The notes under the pieces are model-generated. The model was not told the origin of the DNA. It searched no databases and saw only the letters and a program-made list of their open reading frames with translations. Made by a program: the position numbers and the translations under genes. This document shows positions 1-15,900 of a stretch of 64,000 nucleotides of DNA, one piece after another. Each line of letters starts with the position of its first letter. The stretch's first letter is position 1. This stretch comes from Dimorphilus gyrociliatus (lineage: Eukaryota > Animalia > Annelida), in contig CAJFCJ010000006.1 in assembly GCA_904063045.1 (NCBI GenBank), positions 3,798,408 through 3,862,407 of the forward strand, read 5' to 3'.

Positions 1-3000
1 ATATTCATATTAATAAAGGGCTTAAACAGACTTTCAACTAACCTTGAACTATTCCCCAAGGATATTGTCTAGCTCTGATAGTTTTACCACCTTGCTTAAT
101 CTCTTCCGTGCTACCGACAACCGCAAAAGGCATATCCTCCTAAAGTAGGTGATAAAAAAGAAACGTATTATTATAGAATAACAATGATTACTTGTAATAA
201 ATAGTTACATTGAATTTCTGATTAGCTTTGGCAACGATTGGGTCGTCAGTTGGACACTGATATATATGAACTTTATGCTCTTTAAGTTTTTGAATGATAT
301 TTGTCTTAAATTGCAGTAATTCCGGCTTAGTAATGGAATCGGCCTTGGCAATTATTGGAATTATATTGACTCTCTTTTCAAGAGCTTTCATAGTGGCAAT
401 GTCCAATTCCTTTAGTCTATAAAATGTAAATAAAAGGATAATAGTCAAGAAAACAGTTTATTAACTAAATTTACAAGGAGAGACACTTACGTTAAGCCGG
501 TTGGAGGAATGAAATATAAGCAAACATGAACCCTGGTATCGTGATAGGCGTGTAAAGCTCGTCTAACTTTTAACTCTTCTTGTAGATAGGATTCGAACTG
601 ATCTTCAATATATTTGACAATAGGTTTGTAACTGTTGAATAATTCCACTTATAAATTAGCATAAATCGATGATAAATGAAATATTCTACCTTTCTGATTT
701 GTCTATTTGGTCTGAGAAATTAACAGTATCAATAATAGTTAACTTTAAACGAACTTGCTTCTCTTGCATATCTATAAAAATACATAGTTGAAATATTATA
801 GTTAATACATATTGACATAGTTTAACATCTTTACCATGTCTATGCTCTTTTAGAGTAACTTCATTGTCATTGTGGGCAGCTGGTTTTGTATCAAAGTTCT
901 TCCTGAACAAAGTATCCATTAAAGTAGATTTTCCAATACCAGTTTCGCCTGTATTGTGAAGAATAGAATATAGTAAAAGATATCTAATTACTCTACTATT
1001 ACTGTCGGCAAAATATGCGAAAAATATACGAGATCGATAAGCTATTATAGATTCGAACCTACACATAGTATATTGAAATAATAGTAATTTGTTGCTTCAC
1101 TCCTCCATACTTGATCAGCTAAAGATTCGTTATCAAATACTATCATTTCATCTCTATTAAAAGATTTATATGCTGTTGGATCCTGTGCAATCATATCCTG
1201 AGTAAAATTTGAAGAATTTTTATTAAAAGCAGTCCTGAGTGATATATTAATATCATGAGAGCCGGCTGTACTATTTGCCGAATCAGAGATATCCATTGAT
1301 TGCATGCAATCTTCGTCAACTGTTAATGTATCTCCTAAACTCCTATGAGTAGAGGCTCTTTCATTAAATTCAACTATTAATGAATTGTCAACAAACGAAT
1401 CAGATTGATCAAACGTAAAACATCTACTTGTTAATTCACTGGTATTGCTAATAAACGATACGGGCTCCTCTCCCCTTGAATCGTTGCGAACCTTTTTGTG
1501 CATATGAACTTTTAAGAGATTCAATCGAGCGCCAGTCAGATGGCGCCTCGATAATAATAAGGTGATTTAATAGGTTATTTTTTTTTTTTGAATGTTTGAA
1601 AAATGATCTATTGCAAATTTCAAAATGGAATTTTGTCTTTTATCCTACAATTGTAAGCCCTACAGATCTTTATATTTTATACAAGATTGACATAACGTTT
1701 ACCTAGGCATAGTATATTAAGTGGAAATCCTCTTTCGACACATTTATTTACCAATTGATCTGGCAAAAGATCAAAACCAACGGGATCTTTGTCGGATATG
1801 ATGTATTCTTTGACACTATTACCATTGACCGCTGATTTGGATTCTTGCTTTCTAGGAGCCTGAGTTGGAGGTGCGGGTGGCTGTTAAATAAATATTTAAA
1901 AGTAATTTTTTTGTATTTTATAAACTTAAATAAACATGGCCAAATTTTTTTTTACAACTCATTTCGTATCTTTGTTTAATGAAATAGAATGAACACTAAT
2001 AGCACCAATTGGACGGGAAGGAAAAAAAGGAGGGAAAAAAGGGGAAAAAAGTCAAGGAACTTTCGAAGAAAATACAATATATATATATAAAAGAAATATG
2101 CTTGAATAAAATCGTAAAAGTAACGTTTTATAACTCAGTTTTAAATCTTAATGAATGTCTAAACTTGTTCAAATTTATGGCATAATACGTTTCGATCTCT
2201 TCTAAGAATCTCTCTTCTAATCCTGCAAATATGTTTGTCAGAGAAAAATGTATTGCTCTATCCCTTTCAGGTGATGAAACACCCATTAGACTTTCCATTT
2301 CATTTAAAGTCATTCTTAGGGCAGTATTCCATTCTGTGCATTCGATATCTAGTAAACTATTCATTTTCCACACATCTAAGGTTCCTATTCTACTAGTCGG
2401 TAGAAAATTAGTCACTCTATCATCTATATGTATATCTACTTTTCTCCTTAGGATCTTAGTCATGTCGATGAGAATACTATGCAAATTGAAAGAGCGCTTG
2501 TAAGCTAAGTTTATGGCTTGGTCTCTAATAAAAGTTCCCAAATCTAATATTTGAGCGATGCTCTTTGCAATATCTTTTGAATAGATTAGACTGAAGGTAA
2601 ACCACGAATTCGAAACTGTAACAGGCTTCACTTTGTTCGATCTGAGCCACAAAAGATAGGCCCACAACTGTTTATTATCAGAGCTAATAACGTCTGGAAC
2701 CCTAAAAAGGACGAATGGAATGCCGCCATTCATTCTCTGAATCACAAGGGAATTTTCGATGCTTAGTATTTTTCTTGCATTATCTGAGAATCCACTAGAT
2801 GGAAGGAGGATAGATAAATCCGTTTCTTTCCATCTCTTTACGCTCTTTCTGTCACTGCTTTCGTAGATAATATCCTTCGATATGCGTATGTATAATTGAA
2901 GATTGCGATGGGATGCTATTGTTTGATTTACTCTGTTTTCAAGCCGTAAATCGATGAGAACTGAAGTTGAAGTTAAACTGTTTGCATCGCAATCGAATAG

Positions 3001-3299
3001 ATCCACTGATTCTTCGCCAATCTCCATCAAATGCTTCTTCAATAATGTACTTGAAAGTGTATCATTTCCTACTATTGCGATTTTAAGATTTCTCGATGAA
3101 GAAAATAAAGAACAGAAAAGTAAAAAAATGGGAATGAGCATGGCTCAAAGGACCAATGAGAGGCTATAGAGCGAATGAGTCAGTGAGAGTTGCCTTAACC
3201 ATATATAGATATCTTTTCTGTGTAAAAATTAGCCAGTATTTATATTTAATTACTTACAGGAGCTTTGGGAGGGCCTTTCAACACATCCGGTCCAGACAT
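1..3299 (-). CDS. Septin of the SEPT6/8/10/11 group, multi-exon; 3' end runs off the left edge of the window
   Basis: Exon 3258-3299 ([14 protein letters not shown], donor GTAAGT); exon 1703-1880 (..[26 protein letters not shown]); exon from 948 with P-loop [15 protein letters not shown]; then [48 protein letters not shown]4 IIPIIAKAD and [30 protein letters not shown]. Splice phases checked are compatible. Confidence 0.93.
1059..1503 (-). CDS. Alternative first coding exon of the septin (148 aa, Ser/Asp-rich, ends ..[22 protein letters not shown]|G)
   Basis: ATG at 1503 (the ORF-track start at 1524 is TTG). The phase-1 donor at 1058 fits the same acceptor (949/948) as exon 1703-1880, and the 3' end resembles the septin alpha0/beta1 segment. 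Confidence 0.7.
1524..1552. promoter_or_regulatory. Imperfect inverted repeat containing a CTCF-like core (CAGATGGCGCC) just upstream of the alternative septin exon; putative internal promoter element
   Basis: ATCGAGCGCCA gtcaga TGGCGCCTCGAT; a GC-rich island in AT-rich DNA, 20-50 nt upstream of ATG 1503. Confidence 0.4.
2128..3141 (-). CDS. Intronless degenerate extended/atypical SDR (NAD-dependent epimerase-like fold) with signal peptide and C-terminal KTEL; nested in septin intron 1
   Basis: 337-aa ORF; hydrophobic N-terminus [15 protein letters not shown]; Rossmann-like [19 protein letters not shown]; SDR-like [39 protein letters not shown] and DQAINLA; ends KTEL. Confidence 0.72.
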   Translation of the reverse strand: MLIPIFLLFCSLFSSSRNLKIAIVGNDTLSSTLLKKHLMEIGEESVDLFDCDANSLTSTSVLIDLRLENRVNQTIASHRNLQLYIRISKDIIYESSDRKSVKRWKETDLSILLPSSGFSDNARKILSIENSLVIQRMNGGIPFVLFRVPDVISSDNKQLWAYLLWLRSNKVKPVTVSNSWFTFSLIYSKDIAKSIAQILDLGTFIRDQAINLAYKRSFNLHSILIDMTKILRRKVDIHIDDRVTNFLPTSRIGTLDVWKMNSLLDIECTEWNTALRMTLNEMESLMGVSSPERDRAIHFSLTNIFAGLEERFLEEIETYYAINLNKFRHSLRFKTEL

Positions 3300-3603
3300 A
3301 ATATCTCTATTTAAATTCAACCGGCTGCAATTAGTAAAATCAAAAACAAAAAACAACGATATGATTGGGGCAATTCCGGGTTTCACAAGGTTTAATTTTA
3401 GACTGGTCTGTGCTCCTCTACCATAAAGACATAAATATATATTTAACTTTTAAAATATTTTTATTAAAAAATTAATTCTCCTTTTAAATAATTAGGAATA
3501 AACAAAATATGCGAAAATAATTCGAATTTTCAATATGCAGCCATACTAAAAATTAGAAATGGCGGTGTAAACAAATTAAAAAATTTTTAGCTGAATATAA
3601 AAT

Positions 3604-4836
3604 ATGCCAAAATCTAGCCGATCTCAAATTAGAGCGGCGAGAAGAGCGTCCGAAATTGCTAAACAACGACGACAGATTAATAAACTATCCAATCATTTAA
3701 ATGAAGAAACACCCGTACTTCTAAATGAAAATCAATTAAGTAGGAATAGCGGAGGACACAAAGAGTCAGAAAAAGTAGTTGAAACAATTATTGAACTGCC
3801 AGAAGGTGAGTTTTCTATTTTAAAGACATTTCGAGACAAATAGATAAAAGCAAAAATTTCTCCAGGCAAAGATTTTACAATTCATGCAGAGCGTGAAGAA
3901 GGAGAGTTCAAATCACTTCATATTAAAGAAAAGGAAAAGAATTCCAATTGTGACAATTGCTTTAAATTAAAGCAAACCATTAAGGCTTTAAGACGCAAAA
4001 TATTACATATTCAAGCATTATCGTCTAAGAAACCACGAGAAAAGAAGAGGTATGAAATTTATACTGATATGAAAATTGTCTGGAAAACTGACAGTCTACT
4101 AGCGGTGAAGCGTAAAGATAAAACTCAATACTACATGAAAATTGGAATACCTCAGAAAGTTTCAAAGAGGAAAGCATCAAATGACTGTTGGTCAGAATAT
4201 ATGCACAAACTTTTACAAATAGCCAGTGGATCTATTCAGGAAAATGAAATGGCCATGGTTTTGAGTAACTATATAAAACAGCATAGATCTTTAGCCGAGA
4301 TTGCTATTGCCGAAGCCAGTATGAAATTATTTAAGAAGTTAGACGTTGAATCGTCAGTAAAGCTTAAACAAGAAATGGATTGGTCATCTTGGAAAGTGAG
4401 AAAATTTCGAAAGCTGCTGTCTGAGAGAGGAATCAAAAATTTTCTAGCCAGTGAAAAATCTATGTCTGAATATGAGAGAACTAGGCCGAAACAAATAAGA
4501 AAACCCATGGAATTGGAACCTTCTCCCTATACTGAAGTTAGTCATGTACATCCATCTAACGAAGCAGTCAAGTCTTCGTGTACTTATTGTCCTCCCCAAA
4601 TGCCAGCTTATCATAATGCTCCACAGCATTTCCAACGAAATGCTCCTGTTCATTTACCCCAAATCGCTCAAGCCCTGCCACATCATAATACAACATGGAC
4701 TAATTCTCCTATGGTGAACGGCTGGCAAACACCAACAAATGACTGTCACCATAATTTTCACTTTATTCCCAGTAATCCTGGTCCTGAACAATGGCAATTT
4801 CCACACAGTGGTACTTTCTGGAATCAACATGTATAA
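3604..4836 (+). CDS. Two-exon uncharacterised protein (~390 aa): CxxC plus coiled coil, helical segment resembling RAG1/Transib-type transposase N-terminal core, P/H/Q-rich tail
   Basis: Exon 3604-3805 (donor GTGAG) joins exon 3866-4836 (acceptor ttctccAG) in frame; contains CDNCFKLKQTIKALRRKI and LDVESSVKLKQEMDWSSWKVRKFRKLLSERGIKNFLASEK. The family assignment is from memory only. Confidence 0.65.
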
Positions 4837-5801
4837 TATTCTGCATTGTATATATTCCTCTATTCATAGCGAATATCATAAAATGTTACAAAATGTTTAC
4901 AATAAAGTATCAACAATTCTAGTAAGATATTGTTACAAGAAAGCAATTTATTCAGCAGGGAAAGATAATTATATGCAAATGAGGTCCAAATGACGCTGCA
5001 TACAAGCATATGAATACTTTGTCAGATGGAAATTGCAGTGACTGGAAAAAAAAAACAATTTATAGATAATTTGAAGTACAGAAAAACTTCAGATACCATC
5101 AAAAGACTAACATAATTTAGGTTGGAAAGTTTAGAATATCTTAATTTTTGCTTAAAGAGTGTATAGTAAAGATTGAAGTTGCAGAGCATCTCCTCAAAAG
5201 AGTAATTTTGAAAGTTAACTCTTCTAAGAAAAGTTACAAATATTCCCAAGAATTCCTTTTGAGATTAACTTCATCAGTCTTGATAATTTGATTAATAGTT
5301 TAATAACATTTTAAACAGAGTTTCACAATCAATGAGTCCTGATTTGCATGAAGAATATCTCATTCTAGAACTGAGACTCATACCATAAACTGTCGTAATC
5401 TATTTTAACTCTGGTAACTCTATATATGACCGGATCATTACATTCTCTACACATTCTAATCTTGCAGATAGTACTCATTCAATGCTGAAAGTATTAGATT
5501 TTGAAATTACTGGTTTTTCTGTCCTCTTTCGGGAATTGGTTGCCGACCAGCTTATAGCTATTTTATTATTAATTATACGGACTGATGCAATAGGTAGGTT
5601 ATAAGTTGCATAACAGTATGACCCATATTGAATGAATTATATAAGACTTTGTTTTGTTTCTCTTTCTTATGCGTTTAAAGACTTCACTTTTAGTTTGTTT
5701 AACAATTCTAGAACAATTAAATAGCATATTATCGTAAATCACATAATTTTCAAGAAAATATTTAATAGGAGCGATAAAAGTCAATATTGAAACCGTAATA
5801 A

Positions 5802-8914: not shown

Positions 8915-9682
8915 GGCTCGTACAATTCAGGTTAAGGTTTTGTATAATAAATTTCAGCAGACGACAAAACTTACGAGAAACCTTTCAATCAGCCTATTAA
9001 ATCATAACAAAGTTACTTCATAATAGTCGTACGTCCTACATTTTGCATATTTCATAAATTATTCATTTATTTTTGTCTATTTTTTATTTCTGAGCTATCG
9101 ATCTCTATAACTGATATAATACAAAGATAATATTTAATTTCTTTCGCTTACTGTACTCATTCAGTCATGACTAAGGGTTTTTCGATAAAATAAGCCGAAT
9201 TACGAAAAGTAGATTTGATAGACAATTATCTAAGTACGCGTGTCAGAAGACAAATTACTTATGGCCTGTGTTTTGCACGAATTAATTTAACGATGAAAAT
9301 ATAGGAAGATTTTATTTTAATTTTCTTGACGAAGATTGATCTTAAAAAAACAGTATACTTTTCAATAAATTTTATCATTTCCAAGAAAGTAATATAATTA
9401 TCAATTAGTCTTTGACAAATCCCTAACTCCAATATTATATACGAATAAAGTGTAACATTGTAATGTAATAAATGTTTTGACAATTCGATTATCAATTTGT
9501 TTTATTGTGTCAATTTAGCAGTTTTAAGAGCATTAGAGTAAAAAATTAGAGCGAATTACAAATGGTAAAATTTATTCAAGAGCCACTCTATTACTGTAAT
9601 TTTTTCAAGTGTTCATCATATGAGATCAAACGTCATATAAGGAAGTAAGTAAGACCTGCGGTTTTTGTAATTCACCTGAGAA

Positions 9683-9697
9683 CAGGAAGTCACGTGA
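9683..9697 (+). promoter_or_regulatory. Overlapping ETS-like (CAGGAAGT) and E-box (TCACGTGA) motifs in the ACCS/NBEA divergent promoter
   Basis: CAGGAAGTCACGTGA about 275 nt upstream of the NBEA ATG; motif match only. Confidence 0.35.
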
Positions 9698-9970
9698 AGA
9701 TAGTTTCGTACAAATTCATACTTTTTGAGAAGAGTAATAGAAATAATCGCTTTTTAAATATTTACTTCTGATAGAAAGTATAAGAAATTTATTAACTTTA
9801 AATATTCATAATAGGTGTTGAAGAGTTAACATTTTTTTTCTCTGCGGAGCACCGGAAACAGCGTCATATTTTTCGACGCTCCTGCCTGGAAGTGAATATA
9901 TACTTTTTTGACGTGGACAGCCGTTAATACGACCTGAACATCATCTTAGACTCCATGTTTTGACCCTGAC

Positions 9971-12900
9971 ATGTCCAGTGAGGAGGATAAAAATGAAAAA
10001 ACCGTTGACTCGGTTGAAGAAGTAATGAAAATGCCGGGCAATGATGAGTTGAAGTTCGGTGTACTTATCGGTCTCGTCAAAGTGCAGCAGGCATCTAATA
10101 AGGATGTAGTAGATGCAGTTCTTAATTTGGTATGTGGTATTTAAATCTAAAGTTTTCGATTGCGTGGCAAAGTCACAGATTGGGTATAACTTTATTGGCC
10201 CCTGACCTAGGGCGACCCCACCCTATATAGAATTTAGCAATCGAATAAATAAGATTCCTAAGCGACTCCCAATTCTAAATTCTATTTCGAAAACCGACAA
10301 GCATCTTGCAGTCTTAACGATATCAGAAATCGGTTGGTTAGTCATCAGCGCAAGAGTTTAGAATAGTAAAAGTTTTCTTCATTTTTAACTAAATCCCGCA
10401 TTTCTCTGCACATTCAGGCGTTAATTTCACTTTGCATTGATTAATTATTCAGTTGCTCTCTGTTTTTTTAACGATGCGAATAAAATTGCCTGTCGAAACG
10501 TGTTATCTGGGTAGACCAATATCCACATCAATCCTGCTTAAACGGAACAGATTGATCAATCCCCTGCGCATTCTTTAGCGTTTCTAATGATAGTGCGATG
10601 CACGGCTGTCAGTCGATTAGTTTATTATTAATTTGGATTATTGATTTTTCCATTATTGATAAGCGAAATCTTTCTACAGCTTGTCGGAGGTACATTCGAA
10701 CTAGAAAGTAATTTTATCATTAGAGATGCAGAAAATATATTGCACATGGTTGAATTGCTGGAATCTTGTTCTCAGACTTTACAGGTTAGTTAGACTTAAT
10801 ATAATGTTTATTATTGACGTGTTCAATATTCTTGACGGAAATTGAATATTTACTGATAGGCTGAGATTTGGAGTCACTTCACGGCAATTGTAAGAAAATC
10901 CCAACGTAATGTCCAAGCCTGCACTGAAGTCAATCTAGTCAGTGAGGTGTTAGATAAATTGAGGACGGCTGGTGATGTTATAGCTCAGTTACTATTGGAA
11001 ATACTATCAGTTTTGACTTGTTACTCTATAAGCGTACCACAGCTTCGTCAAGTATTCTCATTACTACAGGTGAACACAAAGACAAAAACATGGGTAAGTA
11101 AAAAAGAAAATAAAAAACTAGATGAAATGTGACTAAATGATTAATTATTGCTCAAGCAATTATAAACAAATGAAATTAATAATGAAATTTCTTTTTGTAA
11201 TTAGCCACGGTATTCGGTACAATTATTACAAGTTTTGCGGCAAATGCCCAAGAGACACGGTCCAGACGAATTTTTCAGCTTTACTGGAAATTCAAAAGCG
11301 GTAGGTCTATTTGAATAATTATAGGCTAAAAATGTCTCTCGGTGTAGATCTATTGTCATTGACAATCAAGAATTGTTAAGGTCGGGAATAAGGAAATGTC
11401 TGACGTTTTCGCTTGTAAATTGTGTGACACAGATTTTATAGATAAGGATCCGCGTATCCTTCCTTGTTCTCACACTTTTTGTAAGGAATGTCTAGAGGAG
11501 CAGTTTTCTGAAAGTTCCCTTAATAGCTGTGACAGTTTTTTGTGTTGGACTTGTAAGAGGAGCGTTGAATGGCCTCTTCTGGGGGCTAGCGGATTTCCTG
11601 AAAATGTGTACGTGAAAACTAATGAAGCCAAACAATATACGAATAACTCTAAAGATTCAATTACACCTAAGATGGACCTGATTGATAAAGAGAAAGAAGA
11701 GATCTTTGATGAAATAGACAAGCATGAGAGAGAGGTTATGGAGCAGGTTAAAGATATGATATGTAAACTAAAGCTAGATGCTAAGGAAATATACAGACAA
11801 AAACGTGAAAAACAAGCGAGGTGTAGAGATGCTATCGCATCAAAGGTATTAACGTCATCTAAAGATTCTTCTAATCGTCTTATATTCTCTGAAAAAGCCA
11901 TTTTAGAAAAAAACATAAAGCTAAGCAGTAGAGTCGTTAGAGTACACCCAGAAGCTTGTAGTTCAAGTGAAGAAAAGTTTACCAACAGGATTAAAACGGA
12001 TTGCAGAATTTTAGATATTCATGTGACCAACCGGGAGATCCTTTTATTGTTAGAGTCTAATGAGTTACGAAAATTAACAAAAGATGGAAAAGCCTATAAT
12101 ACTTTGAAAATAAGACTATTGAAAAAAATTACAAGGGATGGTTGGATGACTGAAAAAGACGATTTGATTGGTTTGGGTAATGGTGAATCGAAGGAGTTAC
12201 TTTTCTTTACTAGGCACCAGTTGTTTAAACAGGACGAGCTTAGCACCTCGGAGGATTTTATTTTAAAACCAATCTTTACCGAAAAAGCTTTAACAAGCGT
12301 TTACGTTTCAAACAATAATATTTTTGTTATATCATTTGATCATATTTATAAAATAGACTTTGACGGATTTATTTGTTGGAAGAAGCAAATTTGCAACAAA
12401 ATTTACTTTCCCATCAACCAGAATAAATTGTTTGTAATGGATCAGAACGGTTTGCATTTATTACTTGTAAACTGCGTCAGCAATTTAGAAAGGGTTAAGA
12501 ATAGAGAACTACAAAGTTATTTCTACTATATTACAAAGTCGTTTGCGTTATTTGATGATAAGTTTGTAGTGGTTTGTCAAAAACTTCGTTGTATTCTTGT
12601 TTTTATTACAATTGAAGACAATTGCTGTAGACTCAGCAAAAGAATTGATCTTTTGTATGAACCGTCTTGTGTTAGTGTTGATATTTTCAGAAGAGGCTTA
12701 TACGTTATTGAAAAATTGCAGGATAACTCTATAATCAACTTTATTGACTTGACTATGTTTTTATGAGTCTACGACAAATTAATCTAGAAAATACATAGAC
12801 TTTTTATGCATATTTTACAGGGTATTGCATTACCACCATTAGCTAAATGGCCTTATCAAAACGGCTGGACATTTCATTGTTGGATAAGGCTCGACCCTGT

Positions 12901-15900
12901 AACGGGGATGACGATTGAACGAGAACGTCCATATCTTTATACGTTAGTCAATAATCGTTTTCCTCAAACTAAACAAGTAAAGTAAAATTCTTCCACACAC
13001 TAATTTAACAGATTCCGAACAAGCAAAGGCATAGGATATTCTGCCAATTTTCTTGGCTCTGCTCTTGTTATAACATCTATGAAAATAAAAGGTAAAGGGT
13101 TTCAACATTGTCTCAAATACGATTTTGTACCCCGAAAGTGGTTTATGGTCTCAATTGTTCACATTTACAATCGCTGGAGCCGTAGCGAAGTAAGAGCGTA
13201 TGTTAATGGAAAATTTGTATCTTCAACGGAAATGTCTTGGTTTGTCAACACCAATGATGTATGTATACAATAAAAAGGAATATATCCCGTGAAGTTTTCT
13301 GAGCTTAAATCATTCACCATTTTGTTTAGGCTTTTGACAAGTGTTACATAGGTGGTACACCAGAATTGACAGAAGATACTATGTTTTGCGGGCAAATGAG
13401 TTCCGTTTATCTTTTCAACGAAGCCCTAACGGCACAACAAATTAGCTCTATTTACATTCTTGGACCCGGTTATAAGGTTAAATTGTAAAATTTTTACCAA
13501 GCGATGTATTATATATAAATAATTTATTTATTACAGAGTCAATTTCGTCTAGAAACTGAGAGTGGCTTGTTGTTAGATGAGTCTACAAAAAAAATATTAT
13601 ATGATGGCAGATTGTCAAATACGGTAATAATAACAAGAATTATATACATATTTCTTAGCAACTTTTTTCAAAACTAATATTTGCTTATGTTTGTTTTGTT
13701 AGATTGTGTTTATGTATACTCCGGTATCGTGCGATTCGCAGTTATGTTTGGAGAGTTCGCCTAAAGGAAATACCAATTATTTCGTCCATACTCCTCACGC
13801 CTTAATGCTAGAAGACGTGAAAGCTGTTGTGACTCAATCGATTTACAAGACCCTGCATAGTATAGGAGGTATACAGATACTTTTCCCTCTGTTTTCTCAG
13901 TTGGATAAATCGCAAAGCGACAGCGAAGGAAAACCAACAAAACCGGATTTTAGCGTCTGGTAAGTAGAAAAGAAATGTATTTACTCCTTTCTTTATTAGA
14001 CCGTTTCCTATCGACTAACGAATTCTCAACTTTCTTTTCCCTACGGTACAGCTCAACACTGATGAGCTTGATGTGCGATTTATTAGAAGGATCAGTGAAT
14101 ATACAACAGCAACTCGTGCAAAATAAAGGTTTTCTAGTTATATCATATCTATTAGAAAAGGTATAGACATCAAATATGAATAGTATGCAATTAATTAAAA
14201 CTTTCTTATCTAATGAATACAGTCTCAAAGGGAGCACCTTACCGAAGATGTTTTAGATTGTTTCTTGAATTTAACGCAATATTTAGTTGTTCAACCAACC
14301 GGTGGTCCGTTGTTAAGGCATTTATTCGACCATATCTTATTTAATCCGGCACTATGGATATATTCCCCATACAAAGTAAGGATTTTTTTCTTTTAATCTT
14401 TCTAATCCGGTGGTAATTTGTAAAATTCCTTTTCTAATTTCAGGTTCAATTAAAACTCTATAGCTATTTGTCCACCGAATTTATACAAGACGCTCATATT
14501 TATAGTAATATTCGTCGAGTTTCAGCCTGTTTACAATCTATGCATTCATTAAAATACTACTATTGGGTTATCCATCCTCTCGATAGATCTGGCATACATG
14601 CCAGAGGAAACGATGGCCCTAGACCAACGAAGAGTGAAATGCAAATTTTAAGAGCTTACATTATTTTGTATGTTAAACGATTAGTACTTAGAGTACCAGG
14701 CGTCCATGAAGACGAATTACAAGCAATCCTTAATTATCTATCCACTATGCACGAAGATGAGAACATACAAGTATATTTTATTTGAATATTTATTCACCCA
14801 GATACTAGATTATTTATTATTATTATTTAGGATGTTCTACAATTAACTGTAAGCTTAATGTCGGAGCAGCCAGCATCTATGGTTCCTGGTTTTGATCGAA
14901 AGCACGGGATTAAAACTGTATATAAACTGCTTGCTTCAGCAAACGAAGCGATTAGAATTCAAGCTATGAAGTTATTAGGATTTTTTCTAATGAGAAGTAC
15001 TCATAAGTAAGTTGATGTATTTTAATTTTAATTCGTCGCAACCATTTAGAATTATTATCATTAATAATAAAATACTTTATACATGTATATTAACATATAT
15101 ATATATATCTATATATTTTAATTAAAAGGAGGAAACACGATGCCATGAGCCCTCACAATCTATTCTCATTACTAACTGATAGGCTTATGTTAAATGCCGA
15201 TACACTTTCTATGGCGACATACAATGTCTTATTCGAATTGCTAACTGAAAAAATGACAACACAAGTCATGACGGAAAAACATGCCCAAATAGATGCTAAT
15301 TGCCGTATTGAGAATTCCCGTACGTATCCTTGTTACATTATTCAAAGCTCAAAAGGATTTACCCTACTAATTTACCTCTCTTTCTTTTGCTTTTTTTCGC
15401 TCTTTAGTCGTTTTGAAAGTTATAGCATCGCTAATTCGTCAATCGACACAAACTCACGAAATTCTTTTAGTAAAGAGAGTATTCTTAACCGATTTAACGA
15501 TGCTTTGCCAAGATAGTAAGGACAACAGAAGGTTAATAAAATATTTGTAAATCTACGCAATCTTATTTATTAATATTATATATCAGGACCATACTTCAAA
15601 TGTCAGTATGGCAGGATTGGTTATTTTCTCTTGCTTATATTTATCCTAAAGCAACAATTGAAAAAGAAATAACCAAATTAGTTATGGAACTATTTAGAAT
15701 GTTGTTACATCATGCCATAAAATTCGAATACGGAGGCTGGAGAGTTTGGATTGATACACTTGCTATTGTTCATTCTAAAGTATGCTATTTATATTCACCG
15801 TGTAATAATTCATTTAAGCAAAGAATTTATTAAATTACTTCCTTTTAACACAAGGTTTCTTACGAGGATTTTAAGACTCATATGAATCAAGTTTATGACG

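Follow-up and report, generated by a model that had tools for sequence, protein, structure and literature searches.

What is an open reading frame (ORF) of 456 amino acids (aa) doing inside an intron of a neurobeachin gene: is it an alternative end of its host's transcript, or is it a gene in its own right? The question is posed by a stretch of 64,000 nucleotides (nt) from Dimorphilus gyrociliatus (contig CAJFCJ010000006.1, positions 3,798,408 to 3,862,407), hereafter "the window," whose own numbering is used throughout. Its plus strand carries a gene of the NBEA/LRBA type, and one of that gene's introns holds the ORF, which opens with a RING finger. A first-pass annotation of this DNA had proposed that the ORF could be joined to the upstream NBEA exons through a cryptic acceptor to yield a chimeric E3 ligase. 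The evidence assembled here points elsewhere: the ORF is likely to be an independent, intronless gene that is nested on the same strand within the NBEA/LRBA-type intron and that is not spliced onto NBEA.

The ORF and its host intron

The host was identified by its downstream exons, which match DUF1088, PH_BEACH, BEACH and NBCH_WD40 (the neurobeachin WD40 propeller); in a related species, the exons orthologous to the host also match DUF4704. The features needed for the argument are as follows.

11205..11300, plus strand: host exon of the NBEA/LRBA type; phase-0 end (..FSFTGNSKA); spliced at either end in four of four RNA runs; 86% identical to the related species

11301..12820, plus strand: host intron with the likely nested gene; 1520 nt, GT..AG; joint 11299/11300>12820/12821 in runs X1, X2, X3 and X4

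11396..12766, plus strand: likely nested intronless gene for a predicted RING/coiled-coil/beta-propeller protein of 456 aa; stop TGA at 12764-12766; ortholog P0001; contig, apparently of cDNA, over 11347-12849

12821..12942, plus strand: next host exon, in the ConA-like region of NBEA; begins in phase 0 (GIALPP..); spliced in four of four runs; 89% identical to the related species

From its ATG to its TGA, the ORF measures 1371 nt (456 codons plus the stop) and takes up 90% of the intron, starting 95 nt past the host donor and ending 54 nt ahead of the host acceptor. Twelve introns between positions 9500 and 14500 were verified by reads; they range from 60 to 1520 nt with a median of about 77 nt, making the 1520-nt intron an outlier that owes its unusual length to the ORF within it. 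The first-pass annotation had likewise called this intron atypically long, and its coordinates for the intron, the ORF, the two flanks, the phase-0 exons and an AG at 11379-11380 all hold. On the minus strand, a 171-aa frame with a TTG start (11470-11985) was taken to be a shadow frame opposite the RING ORF.

Conservation and selection

Is the ORF a functional gene? A word search with its protein returned a sole relative, P0001, a protein of 459 aa that is 69% identical over its full length. The first-pass annotation had suggested looking for the ORF in orthologous introns; indeed, P0001 lies intact in the same NBEA intron of the related species, where that intron is 1530 nt long. The surroundings are also kept, with an ADAT2-like deaminase, a glutaredoxin-like gene and an aminotransferase upstream and the DUF4704 exons downstream.

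The two coding sequences differ by only one indel, which comprises 9 nt and is in frame. Substitutions are distributed as expected of a translated sequence (99, 67 and 148 differences at the first, second and third codon positions, respectively). Synonymous divergence (dS) is 0.76, and the ratio of nonsynonymous to synonymous divergence (dN/dS) is 0.26 (bootstrap 95% confidence interval 0.19-0.35). This ratio falls to 0.16 over aa 310-456, i.e., the last ~150 residues, which are the most conserved part of the protein. Judged by this comparison of sequences, the ORF is a real, protein-coding gene under purifying selection.

RNA over the locus

We next consider whether the ORF is transcribed, and as part of which RNA. 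The data were assembled contigs of four public runs, placed on 9500-14500: X1 is a coral-reef metatranscriptome (>99% identical), X2 and X3 derive from a related species (~90% identical in exons), and X4 derives from the same strain (100% identical). The contigs were interpreted by placement and topology only, and no ranking of expression was drawn from their depths.

The host junction 11300>12821 was seen in all four runs. Because the intron is spliced out as a unit and the ORF (11396-12766) lies wholly within it, the ORF is nested in its host. The first-pass annotation had proposed weighing this junction against a second one, 11300>11381, that would create the chimera; among the joints listed for the contigs of the four runs, only the first of the two occurs.

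The contigs of X4 are spliced at all 12 introns. One of them, contig 14, is colinear with the genome over 11347-12849 (1503 nt) and spans the whole ORF. Its first position lies 34 nt ahead of 11381, over which it passes without a break. The host-exon contig of the same run, contig 12, passes unbroken through the 11299>12820 joint, and the X4 topology retains no branch at any of three positions: the donor, 11348 and 11381. A junction that carried most of the ORF's RNA would leave such branches and is therefore unlikely. Furthermore, no X4 contig lies on 11301-11346, on 10129-10461 (part of a 550-nt host intron farther upstream) or on the short introns. Thus, the cover of the ORF reflects neither DNA contamination nor general intron retention.

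These placements suggest a course of expression in which the nested RNA would begin inside the intron, about 47 nt past the host donor and about 49 nt ahead of the ATG, and would not be joined to the upstream NBEA exon; the host would splice out the whole nested unit (11300>12821). We infer both the start near 11347 and the strand of the RNA from the contigs. Two other origins for the 5' end were considered and rejected. The start of contig 14 coincides with an AG at 11346-11347, which could close a mini-intron of 47 nt (11301-11347); no branch leaves the host contig at its donor, such an intron would be shorter than any verified one, and its frame would lead into a stop (IYCH*). Trans-splicing of a spliced leader to the nested RNA was dismissed on the finding of no loose letters ahead of 11347.

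Flanks of the likely nested gene

Two very short flanks separate the ORF from the ends of the host intron:

11301..11395, plus strand: 5' flank, candidate core promoter and 5' untranslated region (UTR); conserved; X4 contig start at 11347; TATA-like TATAGGCTAAAAA at 11320-11332

12767..12820, plus strand: 3' flank, from the stop to the host acceptor; 54 nt; 46% identical to the related species, a neutral level; RNA continues past the acceptor

Over the 95-nt 5' flank, identity with the related species is 73%, versus 55% for this gene's short introns when pooled (Fisher p=0.0013). It contains the TATA-like motif, which is partly kept in the related species and sits ~27 nt ahead of the contig start. 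The flank is thus a candidate for a constrained promoter and 5' UTR squeezed between the host donor and the ATG.

For the 3' flank, direct reading of the sequence finds the variant hexamer AATACA at 12790-12795. In the related species, a canonical AATAAA stands 32 nt ahead of the host acceptor. Several paralogs (members of the RING-first family described below) have, like the window copy, no canonical hexamer near their stop.

Weighing the alternatives

In the first-pass annotation, the end of the host exon at 11300 could be spliced to 11381, making the ORF an alternative terminal exon and the product an NBEA N-terminus-VGNKE-RING-coiled coil-propeller protein. The site on which this depends is the following:

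11379..11380, plus strand: proposed cryptic acceptor AG (ttgttAAG/G); no use seen in the four runs; X4 contig 14 unbroken across it

Local translation bears out the observation behind the proposal: the AG would join the host exon in frame to the ORF through a stop-free 15-nt spacer encoding VGNKE. The AG itself is kept in the related species, and the shortness of the ORF's flanks also speaks for the idea. However, the interval from donor to ATG contains six AGs, three of which are in frame and two both in frame and stop-free, so that this property is no more than chance would provide. The site is also a weak acceptor, being an AAG with a pyrimidine fraction of 0.45 upstream, whereas all 12 verified acceptors are YAG. 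In the related species, the spacer from AG to ATG is 14 nt rather than 15, and the fusion would reach a stop after 19 codons; the frame of the chimera is therefore not under selection, whereas the ORF is, in both species. Adding to this the missing joint, the ORF contig that begins upstream of 11381, the unbranched donor and the fact that the RING-first family is otherwise made up of stand-alone genes, each with its own ATG, we consider the chimera largely refuted as a major product and extremely improbable as an account of the locus.

Other observations weigh against the reading that we prefer, an independent nested gene. The nature of X4 as cDNA was deduced from its spliced contigs, as the library type came from no record. 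Contigs in general give neither strand nor true ends nor rare isoforms, and a minor chimeric isoform could have escaped them. Contig 14 crosses the host acceptor unspliced, extending to 12849 (30 nt with the shared G at 12820 included), and the nested mRNA may lack an intronic terminator. The 54 nt between the stop and the acceptor contain neither AATAAA nor ATTAAA; farther along the plus strand, the first such hexamer is met in a host exon, at 13084. Finally, in the related species, a low-depth contig (record 5, 11272-11677) extends with no splice from the upstream exon into the ORF, i.e., some ORF-bearing RNA there starts upstream of the donor, as pre-mRNA or as a retained intron. As to the 3' end, the poly(A) site may overlap the 3' splice site of the host or, less plausibly, some RNAs may continue into the host exons. 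The latter would imply a start near 11347, no termination before the acceptor and run-on into normally spliced NBEA exons, such that the RING ORF would be the 5' cistron of a long RNA with the 3' part of NBEA, or the nested 3' UTR would end in host exons. The merging of contig 14 with the host path and the unconserved tail with no canonical hexamer speak for this arrangement. Yet a handful of pre-mRNA reads would be enough to carry a contig over the acceptor, which makes the crossing a poor guide to the end of the mRNA; the canonical signal in the related species, the AATACA variant in the window and the paralogs that manage without a canonical hexamer also argue against it. In addition, transcripts whose long 3' part carries many exon junctions are normally targets of nonsense-mediated decay. 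On balance, we judge the run-on arrangement unlikely. The record 5 contig, together with the silence of contigs on transcript ends, could also mean that the ORF, as a silent or decaying insertion, has no expression of its own and that the RNA over it is nothing but NBEA pre-mRNA or retained intron. Such an insertion would hardly stay intact in two species at the synonymous divergence and dN/dS given above, with an in-frame indel only. Nor would it explain why X4 leaves the first 46 nt of the intron bare and covers the whole ORF, why the other long intron is mostly bare, or why conservation of the 5' flank exceeds the background level of introns. This possibility is very unlikely in our estimation, and an independent nested gene remains the favored reading.

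Architecture of the predicted protein

What kind of protein would the nested gene encode? Three regions were delineated, with structural models from AlphaFold2 (AF2):

11414..11560, plus strand: C3HC4 RING finger, aa 7-55; ligands C7 C10 C24 H26 C29 C32 C50 C53; sub-cut-off Pfam RING matches; AF2 model

11687..11908, plus strand: long helix, putative coiled coil, aa 98-171; AF2 helix H98-171, pLDDT 54-75

12110..12748, plus strand: C-terminal all-beta domain, modelled as a small beta-propeller; AF2 with family alignment, Foldseek

The eight RING ligands follow the pattern C-x2-C...C-x-H-x2-C-x2-C...C-x2-C with cross-brace spacing, and they are invariant in the ortholog and in seven paralogs. 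The AF2 model of the finger has a pLDDT of ~80-87. Pfam matches fall just below the gathering cut-offs (zf-RING_UBOX, 24.2 bits against a cut-off of 25.2; zf-C3HC4, 19.7 against 21), and paralogs exceed the RING cut-off (L005, 32.7; L008, 32.8). The "RING" label of the first-pass annotation is confirmed, as all eight C3HC4 ligands are present and conserved. No B-box was found by Pfam in the window copy, which has an alignment gap where paralogs hold a Cys/His-rich block; a B-box match was obtained only in paralog L005, and there it was sub-threshold.

A first AF2 model of the whole protein had a pLDDT <50 in its C-terminal half and was excluded from the fold search. A model of the C-terminal domain that was guided by the family alignment reached a pTM of 0.66 and a pLDDT of 70-90 over most of its length, its first 42 residues remaining unmodelled. 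All 500 Foldseek matches of this model in the PDB are propellers, and the best global fits are five-bladed glutaminyl cyclases (TM 0.52-0.57). Against the assignment stands the dependence of the propeller model on the family alignment, and our confidence in it is moderate.

Sequence searches were also made with the C-terminal 262 aa. They gave no match at E<=1 in the animal's own genome, nothing in Pfam at E<=10 (NHL, PF01436, and SGL included; the ortholog had one chance-level match, E 0.088) and only chance-level matches in a PDB profile search (E 0.4-2, mostly BamB/PQQ propellers). Among 1.84 billion representatives, they found the ortholog only. Alignment by hhalign to a profile of five paralogs returned a probability of 0.5%. 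Against a profile of 20 paralogs, the value was 24.3 (P 0.006), and 30 of 30 column shuffles scored lower (maximum 19.7); in leave-one-out trials, divergent true members reached 23-24, level with the window copy, and good members 41-73. ESM features lean toward the NHL/SGL clusters (0.88-0.92), which we treat as a lead only.

Guided by these models, we read the protein as a RING, a coiled coil and a small beta-propeller, the last of which has diverged past sequence recognition while under purifying selection. The description "NHL-like" in the first-pass annotation is therefore only partly right: the window copy has no NHL match, but a beta-propeller is what its C-terminal domain is modelled as, and NHL or SGL matches occur in some paralogs. 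Presumably, the product would be a RING-type, E3-ligase-like protein, in which the N-terminal C3HC4 RING would dock an E2, the long helix would probably serve as a dimerising coiled coil and the propeller would probably be the substrate-binding module.

A lineage-expanded family

The nested gene has relatives in the same genome. At least 76 RING-first matches were found in its 78 Mb, mostly as single open frames of 450-650 aa. Paralogs that were sampled gave an NHL match (L005, 26.4 bits, above the cut-off), SGL matches and a sub-threshold B-box. The RING-first family thus appears, by its domain matches, to be a TRIM-NHL-like expansion, and the nested gene is a divergent, old, single-copy member of this lineage-expanded family. 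Dense tandem arrays of RING-first matches occur at G000:C5:2.38-2.60 Mb (at least 25 matches on contig C5), C24:3-18 kb and C2:2.95-2.97 Mb; their frames are mostly 480-580 aa long and lie on both strands.

A second nesting involves this family. At locus L038 (G000:C2:2102000-2110500), two minus-strand MIB_HERC2 exons of a MIB1-like gene stand 5.7 kb apart. Between them are two tandem, intronless RING-first ORFs, at 2240-3688 (minus strand) and 3936-5378 (minus strand), of 482 and 480 aa, with 247 nt from one stop to the next ATG. From this pair, it follows that short flanks and same-strand intronic sites are normal for the RING-first family.

How did the gene come to lie in the intron? The fallback offered by the first-pass annotation, a retro-inserted nested gene, stands as to the nesting and not as to the retroposition: around the nested gene, we found no flanking direct repeat or target-site duplication, and after its stop, no A-run or poly(A) remnant. 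Its lack of introns is uninformative on this point because most matches of the family are single open frames.

Comparison with known systems

In Drosophila, ~10% of genes are nested, and ~71% of nested genes lie on the strand opposite their host (Assis 2016, PMC5174743). The same paper reports that same-strand nestings include more than their share of intronless internal genes (71.5%) and that the usual route to a nesting is for a short duplicate gene to be inserted into an intron (PMC5174743). The locus in the window resembles these same-strand nestings in that a short intronless gene occupies an unusually long intron of a large host with many exons. An origin by insertion of a short duplicate also fits a member of an expanded family. 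It differs from typical nestings in the extremity of its packing: 90% of the intron is filled and flanks of 95 and 54 nt are left, the genome measuring 78 Mb and most of its introns 60-110 nt. We conclude that this is, in all likelihood, same-strand nesting of an ordinary sort, a known kind of arrangement that is conserved and tightly packed here.

Neurobeachin-family introns have hosted intronless protein-coding genes before: MAB21L1 lies in an intron of NBEA and MAB21L2 in an intron of LRBA, an arrangement conserved across metazoa (PMC1784063). The present locus shares this setting, but its nested gene encodes a RING-propeller protein and not a Mab-21 protein. The only Mab-21 match (PF03281) in the genome is at G000:C7:2920863-2921414 (minus strand), in a 389-aa open frame that is neither in nor beside a BEACH gene. 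Accordingly, the Mab21-in-NBEA/LRBA synteny is not kept here, and the nesting in the window is an unrelated event.

With respect to the protein, the closest comparison is with the TRIM-NHL E3 ligases (TRIM2/3/32/71 and the Brat/NCL-1 class), which combine an N-terminal C3HC4 RING, a coiled coil and a C-terminal beta-propeller. The predicted protein has the same order of RING, coiled coil and propeller, and some of its paralogs add NHL, SGL and B-box matches. Unlike those ligases, the window copy has neither a B-box nor an NHL match, and its model best fits five-bladed propellers. It would probably work like a TRIM-NHL ligase, on a TRIM-NHL-like plan minus the B-box; this is a resemblance, not demonstrated membership.

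Composite and alternative terminal exons arise by intronic polyadenylation, and a same-strand unit with an intronic 3' end, like the one described here, could in principle truncate its host's transcript. It departs from such exons in that no junction from a host exon into the intron was found in the four runs and the fusion frame is not conserved. [quoted passage not shown]

Other features of the host and its relatives

Two introns upstream of the nested gene, the NBEA intron at 10129-10678 (plus strand, 550 nt) is 86% identical to the related species; its flanking exons are 86-94% identical and short introns 41-66%. It is spliced out in all four runs and single-copy in the genome, and a small X4 contig lies at 10462-10700. 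We found no Rfam match in it, no ORF of >=60 aa and no unusual structure (z -1.2). We class this intron as a conserved non-coding element. An Rfam scan of the wider interval 9500-13200 also gave no match.

A second BEACH-domain gene was located at G000:C20:1666316-1667158 (plus strand), within one uninterrupted open frame of 3186 aa. The NBEA gene of the window, in contrast, is cut by dozens of short introns. The gene on C20 may be an intron-poor or retro-derived BEACH paralog.

Implications

The finding bears first on annotation. The NBEA model should splice across 11301-12820 and the RING ORF should be called separately, as a fusion of the two would be a false chimeric E3 ligase. Neither the nesting nor the diverged propeller alters what is known of nested genes and TRIM-like ligases.

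A bolder view, which we think improbable as a whole, is that the nested gene has a promoter but no intronic terminator, borrowing or ending in the downstream NBEA exons, and that the RING-propeller family, seen nested at two loci in this analysis, may prefer the sense strand of host introns. If there were truly no intronic terminator, the two genes would be physically coupled at the 3' splice site, where the choice of poly(A) site and splicing would compete directly. On the reading that we favor, an independent gene within its host's intron, the locus exemplifies the close packing that a compact genome allows for a same-strand gene, whose RNA would start within ~50 nt of the host donor and whose stop codon lies 54 nt before the host acceptor.

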